Positions 20,444 to 64,000 of a stretch of DNA of 64,000 nucleotides are shown piece by piece (positions within the stretch are counted from its first letter, which is position 1; each line of letters begins with the position of its first letter). Position numbers and translations under genes: made by a program. Under the pieces are notes generated by a model. The model was not told the DNA's origin and made no database searches. It saw nothing but the letters and a program-made list of their open reading frames with translations. Source of the stretch: Tetramitus jugosus (lineage: Eukaryota; Protista; Heterolobosea); assembly GCA_937625935.1 (NCBI GenBank), contig OW569368.1:424978-488977 (forward strand), in the 5' to 3' direction.

Positions 20444-23400
20444 ATGGGCAGGAAGAACAACAAATCCACTGCATCGGCATCGATCCATGCCGAAAACAAC
20501 CAAATGGACACCAAGAGCTTGCACAAGGATGCCGACGGTCACGTCAAATCCATGCTATTCGCCAACCGTAAAAACAAGAATGAACCAACAAGGCGTGAAA
20601 AACGGCGATTAGAGCAAGCAGAAAAGAAACGATCCAAGGCACTTCATTGGGGAAAGACCAGAGGAAAGACTGACACTCAATTCATCTCAAAAATCAATGA
20701 ACAAACCATCAAGGGACTTCCAAAGCAAATTCAAAGCAAAATCAATACAAAAAAACGTTCGAGAGAACAACAGAGTAAGCAATTAAAGGCAAACAAGAGA
20801 GCAAAGGAACAAGAGAGTCGTGATGTTTTTAAAAACAAGGAAGATTTGTTCAGTTTGAGCAATGAAGCTGTTGAAAAATCGGATCATTTCAGTGATGAAT
20901 CAGAGATTGAATCCGATATGGATGATGAAAATGATTTTGGTAGTGGTGGTCCAATCAAGTTATCAAGTGATTTCTTTGGTTATGATTCAGATGACTCTGA
21001 CATTATTGATGACATTTCACCAGAGATGGATCAATTGGACAGCGACGACGATGAAAAATCAAAAAAGACTGGAAAGAAGGAAAATAAGAAGAAGAAGAAG
21101 AGCAAGGGCGGTGATTCTGATGATGAATATGCTCCAGAAGGCAGTGCAGCAATGATTCTCGATGACAAATTCTTTAAAGAGATGGAAGATCGTGAAATGC
21201 CTGATAATCGTTTGATTGAAGAGTTGGAGAAGAAACTTGGGTTCAATAAGAAGAAGAGGAAGCAAAAGAAGGAGGAAGACGATTCAGATTTGGATAAGGA
21301 GTTGGGTATTGATAGTGGAAAGGAGTCGGAGCTTCAAAAGTATGTCAGAGAGAAGCGAGAGAAGAAAAAGGCAGACAAGTCAAAGAAAAAGAATGACAGA
21401 AATTCTGACAATGAAGAAGAGAGTGATGAGGAAGACGATGTTGAAGAGGAGGATTCCGACAATGATGATGGACCTAGACGATTCAACGATGGTCTTGATG
21501 GTTTATTGGATAACCTGGATGAAGATGAAGGAGATGATTTTGGTACTTTTGATCCAGATCTCGCAAGTGATGAAGAGGATCAAAATGATCTTGCAGGTGA
21601 TGGAAATGATGACGTATCCGACTTTATGACAGGTTTGAATTCAGATGATGAAGATGAAGAAGACGAAGATGATATTAATGATGGAATGGATGATTTGGAC
21701 GAGTTTGACAAGTTTGAAATGGGCAGTGAGAACGAACAGAGCGATGAGGACAGCGAGAATGAAGAAGAAGAAGAAGCTTCTAAAGTGACAACATCCATCG
21801 CCGCAGCACCAACCGGAAAGTATATTCCTCCTCATTTGCGCCAAAAGGTAGCAGCAGAAACTTCAACTGAGAAGGGAAATGATAGAGAGAACGATTTTCG
21901 GTATCTGGAGCTCAAAAAGCAAATCAAGCAAATATTGAACAAGGTTGCTTTGGACAATATTGAACTTTGCACGAATCAAGCTCTGTCATTGTACCAAAAG
22001 AATTCCAAGAATGATTTTAGCAAGCTATTGACAGATTTGATCATTGATAGCATTTGTGACAATGTCAATTTGCAGAGTCAGTTTGTGCTTGTTTATGCTA
22101 CTTTTATCACTGCCATTCATAACATTATTGGAGATAATGTCGGATCCGCATTTTTGGAGCGAGTCGTGCACAAGTTTAACGAAATTAAATCGAACAAGCT
22201 GAATGCTACTAACTTATTGATCATGCTATGTCATGTCTATAATTTAGGACTCGTTTATAGTGGTTTTATTTATGGTATTGTTCGAGTACTGTGTGAACAA
22301 TTCACAGAACTGAATGTAGAGTTGGTGTACAAGCTGTTGCAAACATGTGGTTTCCAGCTAAGAACTGATGACCCATCCAGTTTGAAAGATATTGTTGATC
22401 TTGTCCAGTCCAAGGCCGAATCAGACACCAAAGTCAAGGGAGAGAGAATCAAGTTCTTGCTAGACATGATGAACGACATTAAGAACAATAGAAGAAAGAA
22501 AGAGCACGAAGACGACTATAACAAGTATAAGACGCTGAGAAAGGCAATGAAGAATATGCAAAAGAAGCGTGGTTCCAATGCCTCTGAACACACACTCAGA
22601 ATACCCTTCGAGGATTTGCTAAATGCAGATTCAAAGGGTAGATGGTGGATTGTTGGTTCTGCTTGGGTGGGACGTCAGGCAAGCGAAACGCATGAGTCAT
22701 TGGCTAAGTCTGCTCCAACCACACTAAAGTACACTGATAATCTCAAGGTTGCTCTTGAGGGAATCAGCGATAAGAAGATTAAGAAACTCGAGAAACTAGC
22801 AAAGGAGCAAAGAATGACCACAGAGATGCGAAAGATTATTTTCTGTATTATAATGTCTGGTGAAGATTATATGGATGCTTTCCAAAGGTTAGTCAAGTTA
22901 GGCGTTAAGCGAAATGACAGAGAAATTGCTCGTGTTTTGGTTCATTGTTGCTGCCAAGAGAGACAATTTAACGAATATTATGCACTGCTGGCAAAACAAC
23001 TCGCTTCTTTGCACCGAAGCAGTAGTTTAACATTCCAGTATACCTTTTTCGAACAGTTTAAACTGCTGAATACCTTTGCTGTGAGAAAGGTTATTAACTT
23101 GAGCTACTTGTTGGCGTACCTGATCGGAAACAGTGTTTTGTCATTGACATGTTTGAAGGTGGTTGACTTTGAATCGCTCGTGAAGCAAGAGGTCATTTTC
23201 TTCAGACTTGTCTTTATTCATTTATTGCTTGATTATGATGAGGACGTTATTTCAAAGCAATGTTTAAGACTAGTCAAGGTTTCTCATTGTGAATCTCTCA
23301 GAGAGTCAATGCAACTCTTCTTGATGCAATTCATCAAGAGGGAGTTCCGAAGAAGCTTTGTGAATGACTTGTTCACAGTTCGGGATGTATCCAAGAAGTC

Positions 23401-57705: not shown

Positions 57706-58745
57706 ATGGGCAGAAAACGAAAGACTGTTATTGCATCAACAAAAGAAGAGTGCAAATTGCCAAGGAAGCGCAAGAGATCTGCTCAAGAAGTGAAAGAGAA
57801 GAATAAACAGCACAAACACACGAAACTTTCACTTGAAAAGACTACTCTACAACAATTGCTGGCATTGAAGCAAAAAGAATATCATGATAAGAGCAATTCT
57901 CAGTTCGTGCATGAGTTATTGAACTGTTACGACGAAGTACAGAGATTGAAAGAGCGGTTAGCAGATGTTCACAAAGCTATTGAAAATCCGAAGTGTATTA
58001 TATGCGAAGCTGCTTGCGATGATTTATTTTTCAATAAGATCGAGCAGCTGGCTAAGGTCCAAAGCAATCCACTGACGGATACCAAACTAGAAGCAAGAAA
58101 TAATGGTATTTATTTTAGAGTTCGTCAGTCAGATCATGCCGAAAAGTCTCAGGTGTCAGAGAAATGGAATATCTATCAGCTGCGTTACAGCATGTTCATA
58201 TTTTACCTGCTAGAATCAATGAAGTTGTTGAAACAGTTCTCAGTGTATTGGGTGTGAAAGTGAATGGACTTTTTCCCTCCCTGCAACAGCATATTCTCAT
58301 CACCCACCGCTATGCAATATATTCAGACATGTTGTTCTATTCTACTACTAGTGACCGACAATTTTGTATCAACACAGACGACTTCAGTCGTAATTATAAG
58401 GCGCATCAGGTAGTAGCACTAACATCCTCCAATCAATCTGGTAATATGGAGCATCATACTGCTGATATAGCTAGAATACCATCCAAGACGGTTGAAGCAA
58501 AAGAAAACTCGTTGTTCGAGATACGTGACTACTTCAAGCGAATACATGAACTGATGAGTGGTCACGAAGATATCGAGAGTGATATATTACTGCGTGTGCA
58601 GGCTAAACAGAGTGATAGATTCATTGTGGAACAGTTGCTCGGTGAGCGCATCAATGATCACCTACAGAAGCATGGAAAAAAGTATTTGATCACTGTTTTC
58701 TGCGCTGCACATATCGCAAATACTGCTGTTGAACTTGCCTGTGGG
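57706..58745 (+). mobile_element. Frameshifted, 3'-truncated DDE-type DNA transposase fragment
   Basis: Basic NLS-like N-terminus and coiled coil, then INTDD..R, QSDR and FCAAH (CxxH) pattern; frameshift near 58150; cut by the MITE/telomere junction. Confidence 0.55.
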
Positions 58746-58949
58746 GGGAGCGTCCAGATATTATTTCTTACGCCCTAGGGAGGGGGTCTGAGAAATTTAT
58801 TCAAATATTTATTCATAGGGGGTCTGTTGATCTCAATCCTAGTAGGATAATTAGTCTAACGGTCGAATTTACAGGAAAATGTGTTATTCAAATTTATTCA
58901 AAACAGGCTGGGAGGGGGTCAGTGGTGAATATAATATCTGGACGCTCCC
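58746..58949. mobile_element. 204-bp MITE with perfect 19-bp TIRs
   Basis: GGGAGCGTCCAGATATTAT (58746-58764) and ATAATATCTGGACGCTCCC (58931-58949); GGG on both flanks; internal direct repeats GGGAGGGGGTC and AAATTTATTCAAA. Confidence 0.85.
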
Positions 58950-60327
58950 GGGGGGTTGGGTTTGGGGATACATAAACCTAGCTCAACCCTTTTTTATTAG
59001 GCCTAATATGGAAGAGGAATGTCTAAATATGGTTTTTGAGTGATTTTGACTTTAGGTTGGGTTTGGACTTCATAAGCCTAAACCCAACCTATAGAGATTA
59101 TGACTGTTTTTAACATTGTCTAACAGGATTTAACAGGATTAAAGCTGTATCGTCTCGAAGAGACGATCGCTCCCTGCTGTAATTAACAGATTTTCTCTGC
59201 AACAGGATTAAAGCTGCAACAGATTTTTATGATAGATTTTTTTCAGAAAAGCATGAGATTAACACTGGACTGCATGATAAGAGACCTGTTTTTTTCAGAT
59301 TTTGGACTGGAATTTTAGACCTCTAGTATTCATTTGAAGCATTAAATCTGTTATTTCTGTCATTTTTTTTGTTTTTTCGGGTTGATTGAGTTGCATTTCA
59401 GTACTTTGACTTTTGATTACCTTGAAATTCTCTTGACTTGATGATTTTCACCAGTTTTAGAGATAATACGGATACATCCTGGATTCCCCAACCTAAGGAA
59501 ACGATTTCCTTATATAGTAATTTTTTTTTGAGATTTTTTATTGCTCTCGGAGCTTCAACAGGATGAGATGAAGAGATCGGCGTGATTTCAACTCGATTTG
59601 AGCTTTATAGGCTCGTAGAGCCGATATATCTGTGCTGTATTAAACAGATTTTTATCGGCAACAGTGTTAAAACTGCAACAGATTTTAGACGACTTTGATT
59701 CTGTATTGGGCGTAAGAGGTACAAGTTAAACATGATTTCTTTGTTTTAAATCAGAGTATTGGGACATTATTTGATCATTTTTCACATAATTTCCGACTAA
59801 AAGTATTTTTTGACTCAGTGTCTTAGTACTTGATTTTTCAGAAATTTGGATTGACTTGATTTAGTGTTTTTCTGAATAGAATCGACAGTTCTTATCTAAT
59901 AATCACTGTAGAATCAGATATTTTATCTATTTAAGAGCCCATTTGATTTAAAATTTTGTCAGATAGTGACATAGTTTGTTTTCCAATTTTAATCTAATTT
60001 ATAGTTGGAATGCCAGATCCAAAGCGTCAGAAATCCAGAGAACTAACTTTTTCTGAGTGACATTTCAGATTTATGATGGAAATCAACTGAGAATCTTTGA
60101 GAAAAATGGTTCTTTTGCGAGAGATTAGCGCTGAAAGAGTGAGAAGCAAAACTTTGTTCTTTCTTGAATGCAGAGTTGAATACCCAGACCCAACCCGTCA
60201 TAACTGAAAAGAAAGAGCAATGATTACTCATTAAACGTGTATTGACTCGCTTGATTGCCTCGAATCCTTCCAGATATGGAATGAGAAGTTTTCGATTTTC
60301 GACAAATACTCATGAATGTCAAGCGAT
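58950..60327 (+). repeat. Internal telomere remnant followed by two diverged non-coding units related to the ends of the YR element
   Basis: GGGTTGGGTTTGGG-GATACAT at 58953-58973; 30-bp exact repeat 59470-59499 = 60347-60376; homologous blocks 59175-59227/59633-59686 and ~59400-59442/59825-59860. Confidence 0.8.
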
Positions 60328-60475
60328 GGGTTGGGTTTGGGTTTGGGGATACATCCTGGATTCCCCAACCTAAGGAGAGCTATTTCCTTATATATCATGT
60401 TTTTTTTTTGCTAGCTATCATTGCACTGGCAGCGTTAGCTGACAGTGCTGAACATCTATATGAAAATTTGAGCTT

Positions 60476-62605
60476 TTATTCACTATCGCTGGAGAGAACA
60501 ATCTCCTCAATATCATACTCCTCTTCACTCTCAGGTTCTACCACTCCCTTATATTGCTCATCCAATTCTCTCTTGAGTCTCTGGTATTTTACCTTGATTG
60601 CTTCAATTTCGTCCTTCTCCTTCTTTGCAAGGACACCTACCTTTCTCTTGTATGTTCCCTCATTCAAAACTAGAGTTGTACTCAACTTTCCTCTCTTCTT
60701 AAATTTCTCTGCCAATTTCTGTGCAACAAATAGTTGAGCTTTCTCATCGGCATAGAACTTTCTTATGAGAGAAGTAGCACCATAAACCCTTTCAATTGAG
60801 ACCTTTCTATCTCTCTTCTTCTCATTAATGTACTGTTGGTCCTTGGCCAACAATATTTTGCACTCAGCAGTTTCCGCCTCTTTCAAGCAGTTTCTCTTCC
60901 AATAGGCAAGCCAAGCAATATCCTTACCACTATCATCATTGATAATTTCATTATCCAAATCAGAATCAAGACTTCTATGATAATCCTTGAAGTAATTTGG
61001 AGGTTGAAGTCTTCTAGCCTTTGGAGCCCACTTCTTTGGCTTTTCACTATTGCACTCATGATAGATGATAGACTGAATGAGGTCAACATCAGTAATATGA
61101 GCATTATCATCAATAGAAGCTATTGGAACATCCTCATCTAAGAATCCCATATCCTTAGCCAATTGACTCAAAGTCCTAAATGATTCAATTCTCTCAGATG
61201 GTTCTTGCAATGAATTGATGGATGAGAAATGTTGAGTAATCCATCTATCATAAGGTTTGAGACTCTCCTTATTCTTCCAGTGAACAAAGGTTGCAAGTGT
61301 ATCAGCTACCTTGTCATCAAACACTCCATTGTTCTCAATTCTGTTTCCCAACAGACAAGTAACAACCAGACCAGATCTCATTGATCTTGTAGAGTACCTC
61401 TTGTCAATAGTTGCAGAGAGACTCTTAATAGCATTACTCATACTCTTGTTAGTCCAAGTAGTAAACTTTCCATGGGGAGTGAACAATGGTTCATCTTGTA
61501 GACCAGGATTCAAAGTGAAGTCACCCTTAATCAAACATTCAGCAGCACTACCTTGCTCAAAAACTCCTCTGATATCAGCCAGGTAAATGAGTAATGAGAT
61601 GTTTGGACACATCTTCAAGTTGACCCAACCAAGCAAGTTCTGTCTCCACACATTAGCAAGTAAAACCTTGTCCTTGACAATCTCCATATCGAGACAAAGA
61701 CGAATCTTGTTGTCAGCAACAATCTTGGTCCAAGTCAAATGTTTCAACTTGACATGTTCAAAAGAATCAGCTCTGAGACCTCTTGCTCTGCCTTGTGCTA
61801 AAACAGCATCCAATCTTGCACCAGAATCAGTTGTTTGATCACATAAGAGTCTTAACTTGACCAAGTCAGGATTCATCAGAGGTTCAACCTTGAACTTGTC
61901 ATTTCCAAACTTTCTGAGTAATGCTCTCAAGGTGTTCTTGATATCAATGGTAAATTCAGCTCTCAAATTTCTATCTCTCTTGGTCTTGTAGAGAAAAGCC
62001 AAAAATCCATAACAGAAAGTACTCTGAATGGTAGAGAACTGATAGTTCTTATCAACCTTGAGCCAATAGAGATACATCATCAAAGTGAGCTTCTTCATTG
62101 GATATGGAGTAGGTTGATACTGGAGGAAGTCTGGAAACTTGGAATCCATCTCTTGCAAGAAAGAAAAGTATCTTCTTTCAGCAAAGATGAACAAATTAAC
62201 AGTAGCAGGAGCATACTGTGTATTGGAGACATTAGCAGTAACAGTAACTGCAGCCTCATTCAATCTTCCCATTTCACCAAGAGAATCAAAAGTAACCTGA
62301 GGGAACAAATCATCATCAGCTCCACCTCTAAAAGAGTCATTGATGTCAGTGAACTCTAGGTCTCTGATGGATCTTGAACTATTGACAGAGTTATTCAACA
62401 GAGTCATCTCAGATTCAGCAATTGTTCTTTCGACTCTAGCCTCCAAGTCATCACCTTCATTGAGTTCAGCCAAGTGACCAAGGTCAAATTCCTCATGATC
62501 ATCCATTTTTTCAAGATCCTTGAACAGTTGGTCAACAGTTTTCTCAAAGGTAGCATCAGCAGGGCAAGCAGCAGCAGGAATAGTAACAGCAGTAATAGCA
62601 GACAT
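60476..62605 (-). CDS. Tyrosine recombinase (integrase family), 709 aa
   Basis: Core-binding-like LMMYLYWLK..KNYQFSTI; catalytic R278 (GLRAD), K313, CP....L..YL, PLF, R407-S-M-R410-SG, W443 and Y452 (Cre-like 9-residue W-Y spacing). Confidence 0.88.
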   Translation of the reverse strand: MSAITAVTIPAAACPADATFEKTVDQLFKDLEKMDDHEEFDLGHLAELNEGDDLEARVERTIAESEMTLLNNSVNSSRSIRDLEFTDINDSFRGGADDDLFPQVTFDSLGEMGRLNEAAVTVTANVSNTQYAPATVNLFIFAERRYFSFLQEMDSKFPDFLQYQPTPYPMKKLTLMMYLYWLKVDKNYQFSTIQSTFCYGFLAFLYKTKRDRNLRAEFTIDIKNTLRALLRKFGNDKFKVEPLMNPDLVKLRLLCDQTTDSGARLDAVLAQGRARGLRADSFEHVKLKHLTWTKIVADNKIRLCLDMEIVKDKVLLANVWRQNLLGWVNLKMCPNISLLIYLADIRGVFEQGSAAECLIKGDFTLNPGLQDEPLFTPHGKFTTWTNKSMSNAIKSLSATIDKRYSTRSMRSGLVVTCLLGNRIENNGVFDDKVADTLATFVHWKNKESLKPYDRWITQHFSSINSLQEPSERIESFRTLSQLAKDMGFLDEDVPIASIDDNAHITDVDLIQSIIYHECNSEKPKKWAPKARRLQPPNYFKDYHRSLDSDLDNEIINDDSGKDIAWLAYWKRNCLKEAETAECKILLAKDQQYINEKKRDRKVSIERVYGATSLIRKFYADEKAQLFVAQKLAEKFKKRGKLSTTLVLNEGTYKRKVGVLAKKEKDEIEAIKVKYQRLKRELDEQYKGVVEPESEEEYDIEEIVLSSDSE

Positions 62606-62709
62606 AGTAACAATATTATTAGTAGTAATAGTAATAGTATAGTGTGTGTTTGTTTTTTGTTGGTGTTTTTTGTCGGTTGGTCGCGAATCATTTTATAGGG
62701 CAAAAAAAA

Positions 62710-62790
62710 ATCTCGGAAGAATCTCGGAAAGAATCCCGCACGCGATCCCGCAAAAAAAATCCACCGCACGCGGATCCCGCACGACGAATC
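62710..62790 (-). promoter_or_regulatory. GC-rich repeat cluster upstream of the YR gene
   Basis: ATCTCGGAA x2, ATCCCGCA x3 and CCGCACGCG x2 within an AT-rich region, 105-185 bp upstream of the ATG. Confidence 0.45.
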
Positions 62791-63200
62791 ATTGAAATAT
62801 CCCGTGAGGAATCCTAACTGACCTTCAACATTTTTACAGTGAACTGGACGTCGCGACTTGGTAGTATGTTGAAGTTGTGCTTTTAGAGATATTCAGCGCA
62901 GGCAAAAATAGTTAGGATGTATTATAAGATGATTCTCAATAGAACACAATGTTATCTACGTACTCTATTGTAAAGAATGAGAAAGCAACATAGAATGACG
63001 GAGGGTGCAACTCCCGAAAATATTTCGAAGGGCAAAAGAGTATAAAAGTGAATCTCTGATGCACTGATCGAAATAAACCAACAAACTCATTAAACATAGA
63101 TAAAGAAGGTTAATTTTTGAAATCTGGGTGAAAAATAGACAGAGAAATGTGTTGGTAAACTTTTTGAGTTTTTAGGTAGAAAAAAAAAAATTGAAGTCGA

Positions 63201-64000
63201 TTTGGGTTTGGGTTTGGGTTTGGGTTTGGGTTTGGGTTTGGGTTTGGGTTTGGGTTTGGGTTTGGGTTTGGGTTTGGGTTTGGGTTTGGGTTTGGGTTTG
63301 GGTTTGGGTTTGGGTTTGGGTTTGGGTTTGGGTTTGGGTTTGGGTTTGGGTTTGGGTTTGGGTTTGGGTTTGGGTTTGGGTTTGGGTTTGGGTTTGGGTT
63401 TGGGTTTGGGTTTGGGTTTGGGTTTGGGTTTGGGTTTGGGTTTGGGTTTGGGTTTGGGTTTGGGTTTGGGTTTGGGTTTGGGTTTGGGTTTGGGTTTGGG
63501 TTTGGGTTTGGGTTTGGGTTTGGGTTTGGGTTTGGGTTTGGGTTTGGGTTTGGGTTTGGGTTTGGGTTTGGGTTTGGGTTTGGGTTTGGGTTTGGGTTTG
63601 GGTTTGGGTTTGGGTTTGGGTTTGGGTTTGGGTTTGGGTTTGGGTTTGGGTTTGGGTTTGGGTTTGGGTTTGGGTTTGGGTTTGGGTTTGGGTTTGGGTT
63701 TGGGTTTGGGTTTGGGTTTGGGTTTGGGTTTGGGTTTGGGTTTGGGTTTGGGTTTGGGTTTGGGTTTGGGTTTGGGTTTGGGTTTGGGTTTGGGTTTGGG
63801 TTTGGGTTTGGGTTTGGGTTTGGGTTTGGGTTTGGGTTTGGGTTTGGGTTTGGGTTTGGGTTTGGGTTTGGGTTTGGGTTTGGGTTTGGGTTTGGGTTTG
63901 GGTTTGGGTTTGGGTTTGGGTTTGGGTTTGGGTTTGGGTTTGGGTTTGGGTTGGGTTTGGGTTTGGGTTTGGGTTTGGGTTTGGGTTTGGGTTGGGTTTG
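63201..64000 (+). repeat. Telomere (TTTGGG)n
   Basis: 800 bp of TTTGGG with the G-rich strand running toward the window end; TTGGG variants at ~63951 and ~63992. Confidence 0.97.

Follow-up and report, generated by a model that had tools for sequence, protein, structure and literature searches.

In yeast, Y' elements form tandem arrays of discrete units at chromosome ends, with short telomere-type tracts between them; they carry a gene for a DNA enzyme and are spread and homogenized between ends by recombination or break-induced replication. These elements are 5 to 6 kb long, encode a helicase, and are not known to have a nucleotide-precise fixed tract joined to unrelated flanks. The endonuclease (EN)-less Penelope-like elements Athena and Coprina attach to chromosome ends via short reverse-complement telomere repeats at their 3' ends (PMC8557442).

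Here we analyze a protist chromosome whose last 5 kb is three units piled successively on a worn tip (Table 1). The window, by which we mean the whole 64-kb stretch of DNA that was analyzed, lies at the right end of C25, one of the 56 contigs of a 26.35-Mb assembly. The complementary telomere repeat opens all 20 of the left contig ends that were fetched, indicating that the contigs run from telomere to telomere. Our analysis covered 40 of the 112 chromosome ends of the assembly. In a set of 21 ends chosen irrespective of their unit-2 content, interstitial G-strand tracts in telomere orientation were detected within the last ~6 kb of every end (mean, 1.9), while the first 55 kb of the window, which served as an interior control, contained one such tract. 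Since these tracts are present in 21/21 unbiased ends, stacking is the rule in this genome.

Table 1. Parts of the terminal stack and of its immediate surroundings, in window coordinates
Feature	Position	Strand	Remark
MITE-like inverted-repeat element	58746..58949	.	19-nt arms, 100% complementary
Telomere-like tail before unit 1	58950..58967	+	Inner 12 nt match the family tail
Unit 1	58968..59469	+	First ~500 bp of a non-coding family; outer end truncated
Hairpin/palindrome in unit 1	59149..59167	+	8-bp stem; in the block common to units 1 and 2
Unit 1/unit 2 junction	59470..59474	+	5-nt microhomology, GGATA; without a telomere tract
Unit 2	59470..60326	+	857-bp copy without the outer ~122 bp of the family
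Unit-2 counterpart of the conserved hairpin	59607-59625		In the same shared block
C-strand-like telomere motif ACCCAGACCCAACCC	60182-60196		Conserved in the unit-1 and unit-2 families, ~290 bp before the outer end
Telomere-like tail of unit 3	60327..60348	+	22 nt; TGG at 60327-60329 is the microhomology with the unit-2 breakpoint
Unit 3, recombinase carrying	60349..63200	+	2854 bp
Gene for a 709-aa predicted Crypton-type tyrosine recombinase	60476..62605	-	Intact; transcribed towards the centromere
Terminal telomere, (TTTGGG)n	63201..64000	+	800 bp at the end of the window

Two non-coding families and a recombinase unit

The stack begins directly after a MITE-like element, which is its innermost neighbor and the final non-stack sequence; the old chromosome end lay immediately beyond it, and copies of this element with 90-91% identity are located near ends C8L and C47L. 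A first-pass annotation of this DNA had proposed three units in the same orientation, each starting with GGATACAT. We found this motif on the plus strand at 58966, 59470, and 60347, as proposed, and the 64-kb window holds one further copy, at 23385 on the minus strand.

Unit 2 represents a non-coding family with a full length of 972 to 992 bp (about 0.98 kb), whose copies contain no open reading frame (ORF) of more than 88 aa. Near-full copies number at least 40 and were identified on at least 38 of the 112 chromosome ends, i.e., about one third. All are next to contig ends and in a single orientation, a distribution that goes well beyond what chance would produce: minus-strand matches all lie less than 3.1 kb from a contig start, and plus-strand matches all lie near a contig end wherever the length of the contig is known. 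Full-length copies have identical left and right termini on differing flanks. No other copy matches the one in the window with more than 87% identity. Alignment of the window copy to full-length relatives indicates that it stops ~122 bp before the true end of the family; the AAGCGAT sequence at this point is thus an internal breakpoint and not a terminus.

The family of unit 1 is likewise non-coding, measures about 1.2-1.35 kb, and shares its right-end module with unit 2; neither unit contains an ORF longer than 88 aa. We aligned unit 1 to copies at C4L, C6L, C7L, and C14L. Its matches in the genome show 81-83% identity, rising to 95% over nt 1-262 at C23L. A recombinase-type unit at C17L has exactly the first 24 nt of unit 1 at its own left end, an example of how left modules, bodies, and right modules have been shuffled among the unit families. 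The first-pass annotation was also right that units 1 and 2 share diverged internal sequence, a block of ~100 bp with 74-86% identity. A palindrome with 8-bp arms and a GNA center is the top conserved internal feature of several non-coding families, and ~45 homologous blocks were found at other ends. The palindromes of the unit-1 and unit-2 families are distinguished by one compensatory G-C to U-A change, and wobble pairs occur on both strands; a single compensatory pair and wobbles on either strand are compatible with a function of either strand, as RNA or as DNA.

Units 2 and 3 have an exact 30-mer in common at their left ends, and their similarity extends over ~95 nt that include a hairpin and a T-tract (Smith-Waterman z about 30 against shuffles), in agreement with the shared left end described previously. 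The shared right end that accompanied it in that description did not survive comparison with full-length copies of unit 2: over the last 340 bp of unit 3, their similarity is no higher than that of shuffles (z 0-1.6), and AAGCGAT is internal. Similarly, ACTCATTAAAC, described as a right-end feature ~100 bp before the telomere repeats, does occur at 60226 and 63085, but in full-length copies of unit 2 it lies ~225 bp from the end. The right 335 bp of unit 3 are a second, different right-end module, which is terminal at at least 10 other ends. Units 1 and 2 had been taken for non-autonomous relatives of the tyrosine recombinase (YR) element; with only the left-end module in common and with unrelated bodies and right ends, this reading is not supported.

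Unit 3 recurs with 100% identity on another flank at C28R. The 709-aa protein that it encodes gave a weak Pfam match to a SAM-like N-domain (E 0.019), and its ESM features score 0.96-0.97 to the NDC10_II, DUF3435, and Phage_integrase clusters; its sequence displays the motifs RARGLR, RSMRSG, and KPYDRW, and a PDB sequence search with the recombinase produced no meaningful match. Judged by these language-model features, the protein is probably a Crypton-like tyrosine recombinase. Contigs from an oligo-dT RNA library, a metatranscriptome labelled with another organism code, cover 60505-62629 only, i.e., the recombinase ORF, with 98-99% identity; the strandless contigs of this small library contain no part of units 1 and 2 and none of the unit ends. 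The confinement of these contigs to the ORF suggests that the recombinase gene is transcribed.

The recombinase gene is not tied to one place in the stack. The first-pass annotation had put the autonomous copy at the most distal position; this is not a rule, since at C19L a unit with a 68%-identical recombinase paralog lies proximal to a unit-2 copy. At C15L (L045, 872-4189, minus strand), a 4-kb terminal unit contains ORFs of 318 aa and 778 aa, both directed towards the telomere; the longer protein, of 778 aa, is homologous to the window's recombinase (29% identity; E 9e-46). Uniform gene orientation was considered as proof of retro-copying and was rejected, since the C15L homolog faces the telomere; the coding units are thus not simply retro-copied mRNAs.

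All sound copies of the unit-2 and unit-3 types lie within ~3 kb of contig ends, and the only deeper ones are decayed fossils on C50 and C49. Left parts resembling that of unit 3, with 91-92% identity and decayed telomere-like tails, are found on C50 (L054, C50:19637-23105) and C49 (L053, C49:312327-316461). The copy on C50 is 21 kb inside, and both are cut off and followed by unrelated sequence without a telomere tract. These decayed left ends have the appearance of earlier chromosome tips that became buried. Freshwater and groundwater metagenomes also contain parts of units 2 and 3, which indicates that close relatives live in the environment; an exact-pattern scan of a metagenome contig collection for the left-end 24-mer returned 0 matches.

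Inherited tails and truncated junctions

At the left ends of unit-2- and unit-3-type copies, a consensus tract, (T)GGGTTGGGTTTGGGTTTGGGG, is matched over 20 to 24 nt and then gives way to unrelated flank at 18 of 27 junctions, and at these 18 the boundary falls at the same position within 2 nt. The irregular outermost GGGTT repeat of this tail is kept across subfamilies that are 10-17% diverged. The variants of the tail track the unit subfamilies, and the subfamily of C16L and C47R has a different one. Telomere remnants had been reported before two of the three units; tracts do precede the GGATACAT copies at 58966 and 60347 (at 59470, what precedes the motif is not telomeric), but what was called a remnant is mostly the unit's own tail of 21 to 22 nt. 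A constant tail might also be taken as a signature of telomerase initiation. We rejected this reading because telomeres that began de novo at other ends have heterogeneous start points and because the tail variants follow the unit subfamilies. A long recipient tract, 87 nt that merge in register into the tail, was found at C10R, the only such case.

The tail is predicted to fold back on the unit that it precedes. Of 24 left-end types, 11, unrelated types among them, have a C-strand-like motif, [AC]AACC, at a distance of 16 to 26 nt inward from the tail, compared to 5% in controls (binomial P about 1e-8), and folding of the tail onto this motif is predicted with z values of -3.0 to -3.6 (for unit 3, -26.7 kcal/mol and z -3.6). 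An Rfam E-value scan of 58600-63300 revealed no ribozyme or other convincing RNA family near the tail. The sole match, to the Listeria RNA rli52, was dismissed as chance level (28 bits, where the gathering score is 70; E 0.33).

The unit-1 family runs on as ..TACGGATAAAAT.., unit 2 begins with GGATACATCC, and the window reads ..TACGGATACATCC.., which places the joint between units 1 and 2 within a 5-nt microhomology, with no tract. The joint between units 2 and 3 lies in TGG, three nucleotides found both in the sequence of the unit-2 family and in the tail of unit 3. Outer-end truncations of unit-2 copies were mapped at 488, 634, 652, 809, and 857 bp, in each case followed by a tail and another unit or by telomere; the left end of a unit is essentially always complete, and the outer end is variable. 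Identity to the nearest relatives drops from the tip inward, from 100% for unit 3 to at most 87% for unit 2 and ~83% for unit 1. The two window junctions are thus truncation points, each with a microhomology of 3 to 5 nt, and they fit the successive capping of eroded ends, with the youngest unit outermost, and not the insertion of cassettes by a recombinase. The units recur at many ends, and their breakpoints match the boundary between the tail and GGATACAT, so that the successive tip additions in one orientation proposed in the first-pass annotation are supported.

The window junctions were read in assembled contigs and are known from contigs alone, a point in favor of local tandem duplication or of an assembly artefact at a repetitive tip. 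We nevertheless regard either as highly improbable. No two of the three units come from the same family, and every one of these families has many copies at other ends with the same boundaries; freshwater metagenome contigs start exactly at 59470 and 60347; and a metagenomic copy of unit 3 is truncated at another point and then followed by a tail and another unit.

The same junctions bear on the proposal that the array is YR built or integron-like. In such a scheme, the YR would recognize the left module, excise circles or cut at the edge of the tail, and move cassettes, with the non-coding units as passengers. It is consistent with the presence of intact Crypton-type recombinase genes, the ORF of which is found in RNA-library contigs, in several unit types; with the inverted-repeat features of the 95-nt left module common to units 2 and 3; and with a left terminus that is cut-precise, some joints consisting of a full-length right end plus a tail (C35R/C50L). 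However, both window junctions and most others join truncated units, which site-specific recombination would not do; at the two window junctions, the joining is by microhomology. The flanks of the units have no target sequence in common, and the tracts are not variable, as would be expected for integration into telomeres of ~800 bp. Unit 2 and the recombinase unit have no common right end, and the stack position of the recombinase varies. Most of the unit-2-capped ends that were read have no recombinase gene in the 3 to 8 kb of sequence examined per end (C19L has one). Finally, the precise junction is 21-22 nt away from the candidate core and not inside it. We consider a recombinase-driven origin of the array quite improbable.

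The model that we favor, with somewhat better than even confidence, sees the region as terminal-addition units stacked in the order of their arrival. The units have nucleotide-precise ends on both sides, the proximal one formed by a built-in tail of 21-22 nt that is predicted to fold back and the distal one receiving the telomere. At this chromosome, the tip would have eroded or broken just past the MITE (58949), and a copy of unit 1 would then have capped the break. Unit 1 would have eroded to ~500 bp before a copy of unit 2 capped the remainder via the GGATA microhomology, and unit 2 would in turn have lost ~122 bp before the recombinase unit capped the end, very recently, via the TGG microhomology. 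Telomerase would have lengthened the new tip.

Copying between ends and the first attachment

Among the full-length copies of unit 2, there are four groups that are 100% identical and located on different flanks. In the first ~25 basal telomere repeats of C7R and C10R, TTTTGG variants form one and the same complex pattern, and the ends of the group C27L, C27R, C44L, and C47L have basal telomere variants in common along with the same 100% identical unit 2. In addition, mosaic units exist (e.g., C40L compared with C8L and C48L), and two-unit stacks have been copied whole onto differing flanks (C6L = C34R and C20R = C40R). These identities demonstrate DNA-level copying of a unit together with the basal telomere between ends, by recombination or break-induced replication. 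The basal TTTTGG variants (L024, L023, L021, L020, L019, and L018) are a usable marker for end-to-end copying.

It is conceivable that the template was always DNA, as the copying of whole multi-unit stacks and the common telomere variants could indicate. In a purely DNA-based, Y'-like scheme, eroded ends with few repeats would invade the interstitial tract of another end and be extended by break-induced replication, with the involvement of neither RNA nor a recombinase. The 100% identical units with the same basal telomere variants on different flanks, the mosaic units, the transfer of whole multi-unit stacks to different flanks, and the 87-nt recipient tract of C10R, in register with the tail, are all in line with this scheme. 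However, it predicts recipient repeats of variable length upstream of the tail, and 18/27 junctions instead abut unique sequence. The preservation of the outermost GGGTT repeat across subfamilies 10-17% diverged argues against it as well, as does the unit 1/unit 2 junction, which uses 5 nt inside the unit and has no tract. In our judgment, a scheme of this kind is rather unlikely.

A candidate enzyme for an RNA-templated route is encoded in the stacks. A reverse transcriptase (RT) ORF of 601 aa, with a weak RVT_1 match and rotifer-type RT features, is present at C17L (L047, 1857-3662) and C3L (L033, 1609-3414), with a 159-aa remnant at C9L. Units 1-3 and the RT unit have no 3' module in common apart from the telomere-like tail. 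Ends C3L, C9L, C10R, and C17L all have, within the RT ORF, a hairpin and after it a short telomere-like tract. The terminal telomere of C3L begins at this hairpin/telomere-like tract site.

The position of 18/27 junctions at the same point of the tail, on unrelated flank, suggests the use of a template that physically ended where the tail has its outer edge. Going from the observed families, precise ends, polarity, truncations, and microhomologies to the event itself, we infer that the first attachment was most likely RNA templated, in the style of Penelope elements; taken within the overall model, we hold this with a little less than even confidence. The confinement of the RNA-library contigs to the recombinase ORF, the negative ribozyme scan beside the tail, the telomere-facing recombinase homolog of C15L, and the lack of a 3' module common to units 1-3 and the RT unit weigh to some extent against this route. 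The likely template would be a minus-sense unit RNA ending in CCCAAA-type repeats, which would be reverse transcribed from the 3' end of the chromosome, and the enzyme for this first attachment would be the endonuclease-less Penelope-type RT resident in the same stacks. On the RNA-templated reading, the recombinase gene would be the cargo of one unit type and not the builder of the array. The findings as a whole correct the idea of the recombinase as array builder.

An additional role for the recombinase at the left-end module is doubtful but would have consequences of its own. This module, with its 22-nt tail, fold-back stem, and GGAT/ATCC repeats, is a long-shot candidate for a site nicked or cleaved by the resident Crypton-type recombinase, which would create the end of the template. 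If this were the case, whole terminal cassettes would be copied or transferred to telomere-less ends, and healing based on a DNA recombinase would exist beside telomerase.

Comparison with known end-building systems

In this telomerase-positive protist, 21/21 unbiased ends are built of stacked add-on units, and the cap found most often is a non-coding unit of 1 kb that brings its own telomere-like tail. The genome thus offers a natural system in which telomerase, end-attaching elements, and inter-end recombination act jointly. The junctions preserve a record, in the form of the tail, microhomology, truncations, and telomere variants, from which the order and mode of past healing can be read, and the cis elements defined here (tail, fold-back, palindrome, and two right-end modules) are candidates for roles in end protection or mobility.

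Several likenesses tie the stacks to Athena, Coprina, and the rotifer Terminons. As in those systems, the units are strictly terminal and form head-to-tail stacks in the same orientation with telomerase repeats at the tip; reverse-complement telomere repeats are proximal (3'), and outer truncation is followed by the next addition (PMC8557442). In contrast to EN-less Penelope-like elements, units 1-3 encode no RT, with unit 3 encoding the recombinase only, and the RT ORF resides in other units of the stacks. No hammerhead ribozyme was found beside the tail in the Rfam scan of 58600-63300. Furthermore, two of the window's units are non-coding and one carries a tyrosine recombinase, and DNA copying between ends is demonstrable here.

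The analogy to HeT-A/TART stacks, also drawn in the first-pass annotation, holds for the architecture: in Drosophila HeT-A/TART/TAHRE arrays, as here, the tips arise from successive end-on additions, and HeT-A, a non-autonomous member that relies on RT in trans, offers a further likeness. Unlike the Drosophila arrays, the stacks described here have telomerase repeats, attach by a telomere-like tail, and have neither a gag nor an RT ORF in units 1-3; there is no terminal poly(A), and a run of A10 is situated ~55 nt inside the unit.

With yeast Y' elements, the stacks share the occurrence of identical copies, including the adjacent telomere repeats, at different ends. They differ in that the flank junction is sharp at 21-22 nt and does not reflect variable telomere homology, C10R alone having a long tract, in that the units carry no helicase, and in that there are many modular families, most of them ~1 kb long and non-coding. 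The unit-3 recombinase appears Crypton-like by its features. Non-autonomous derivatives of a Crypton or other YR element would nevertheless be a poor description of the non-coding units, given the disparity between left ends (z about 30) and right ends (z of 1.6 or less), the absence of interstitial insertions, and junctions that are truncation points. An integron cassette array differs in that here the recombinase lies inside a unit, at variable stack positions, and the window units are truncated and are not complete cassettes.

Membership in none of these groups (Penelope-like elements, HeT-A/TART, Y' elements, Crypton derivatives, and integrons) is a fit for the units, and a literature search found no published description of such units. 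Set beside the known systems, what is new here is the combination of non-coding families, a precise inherited tail with a fold-back, a modular mosaic, the microhomology junctions of the window, and evidence for spread at the DNA level.
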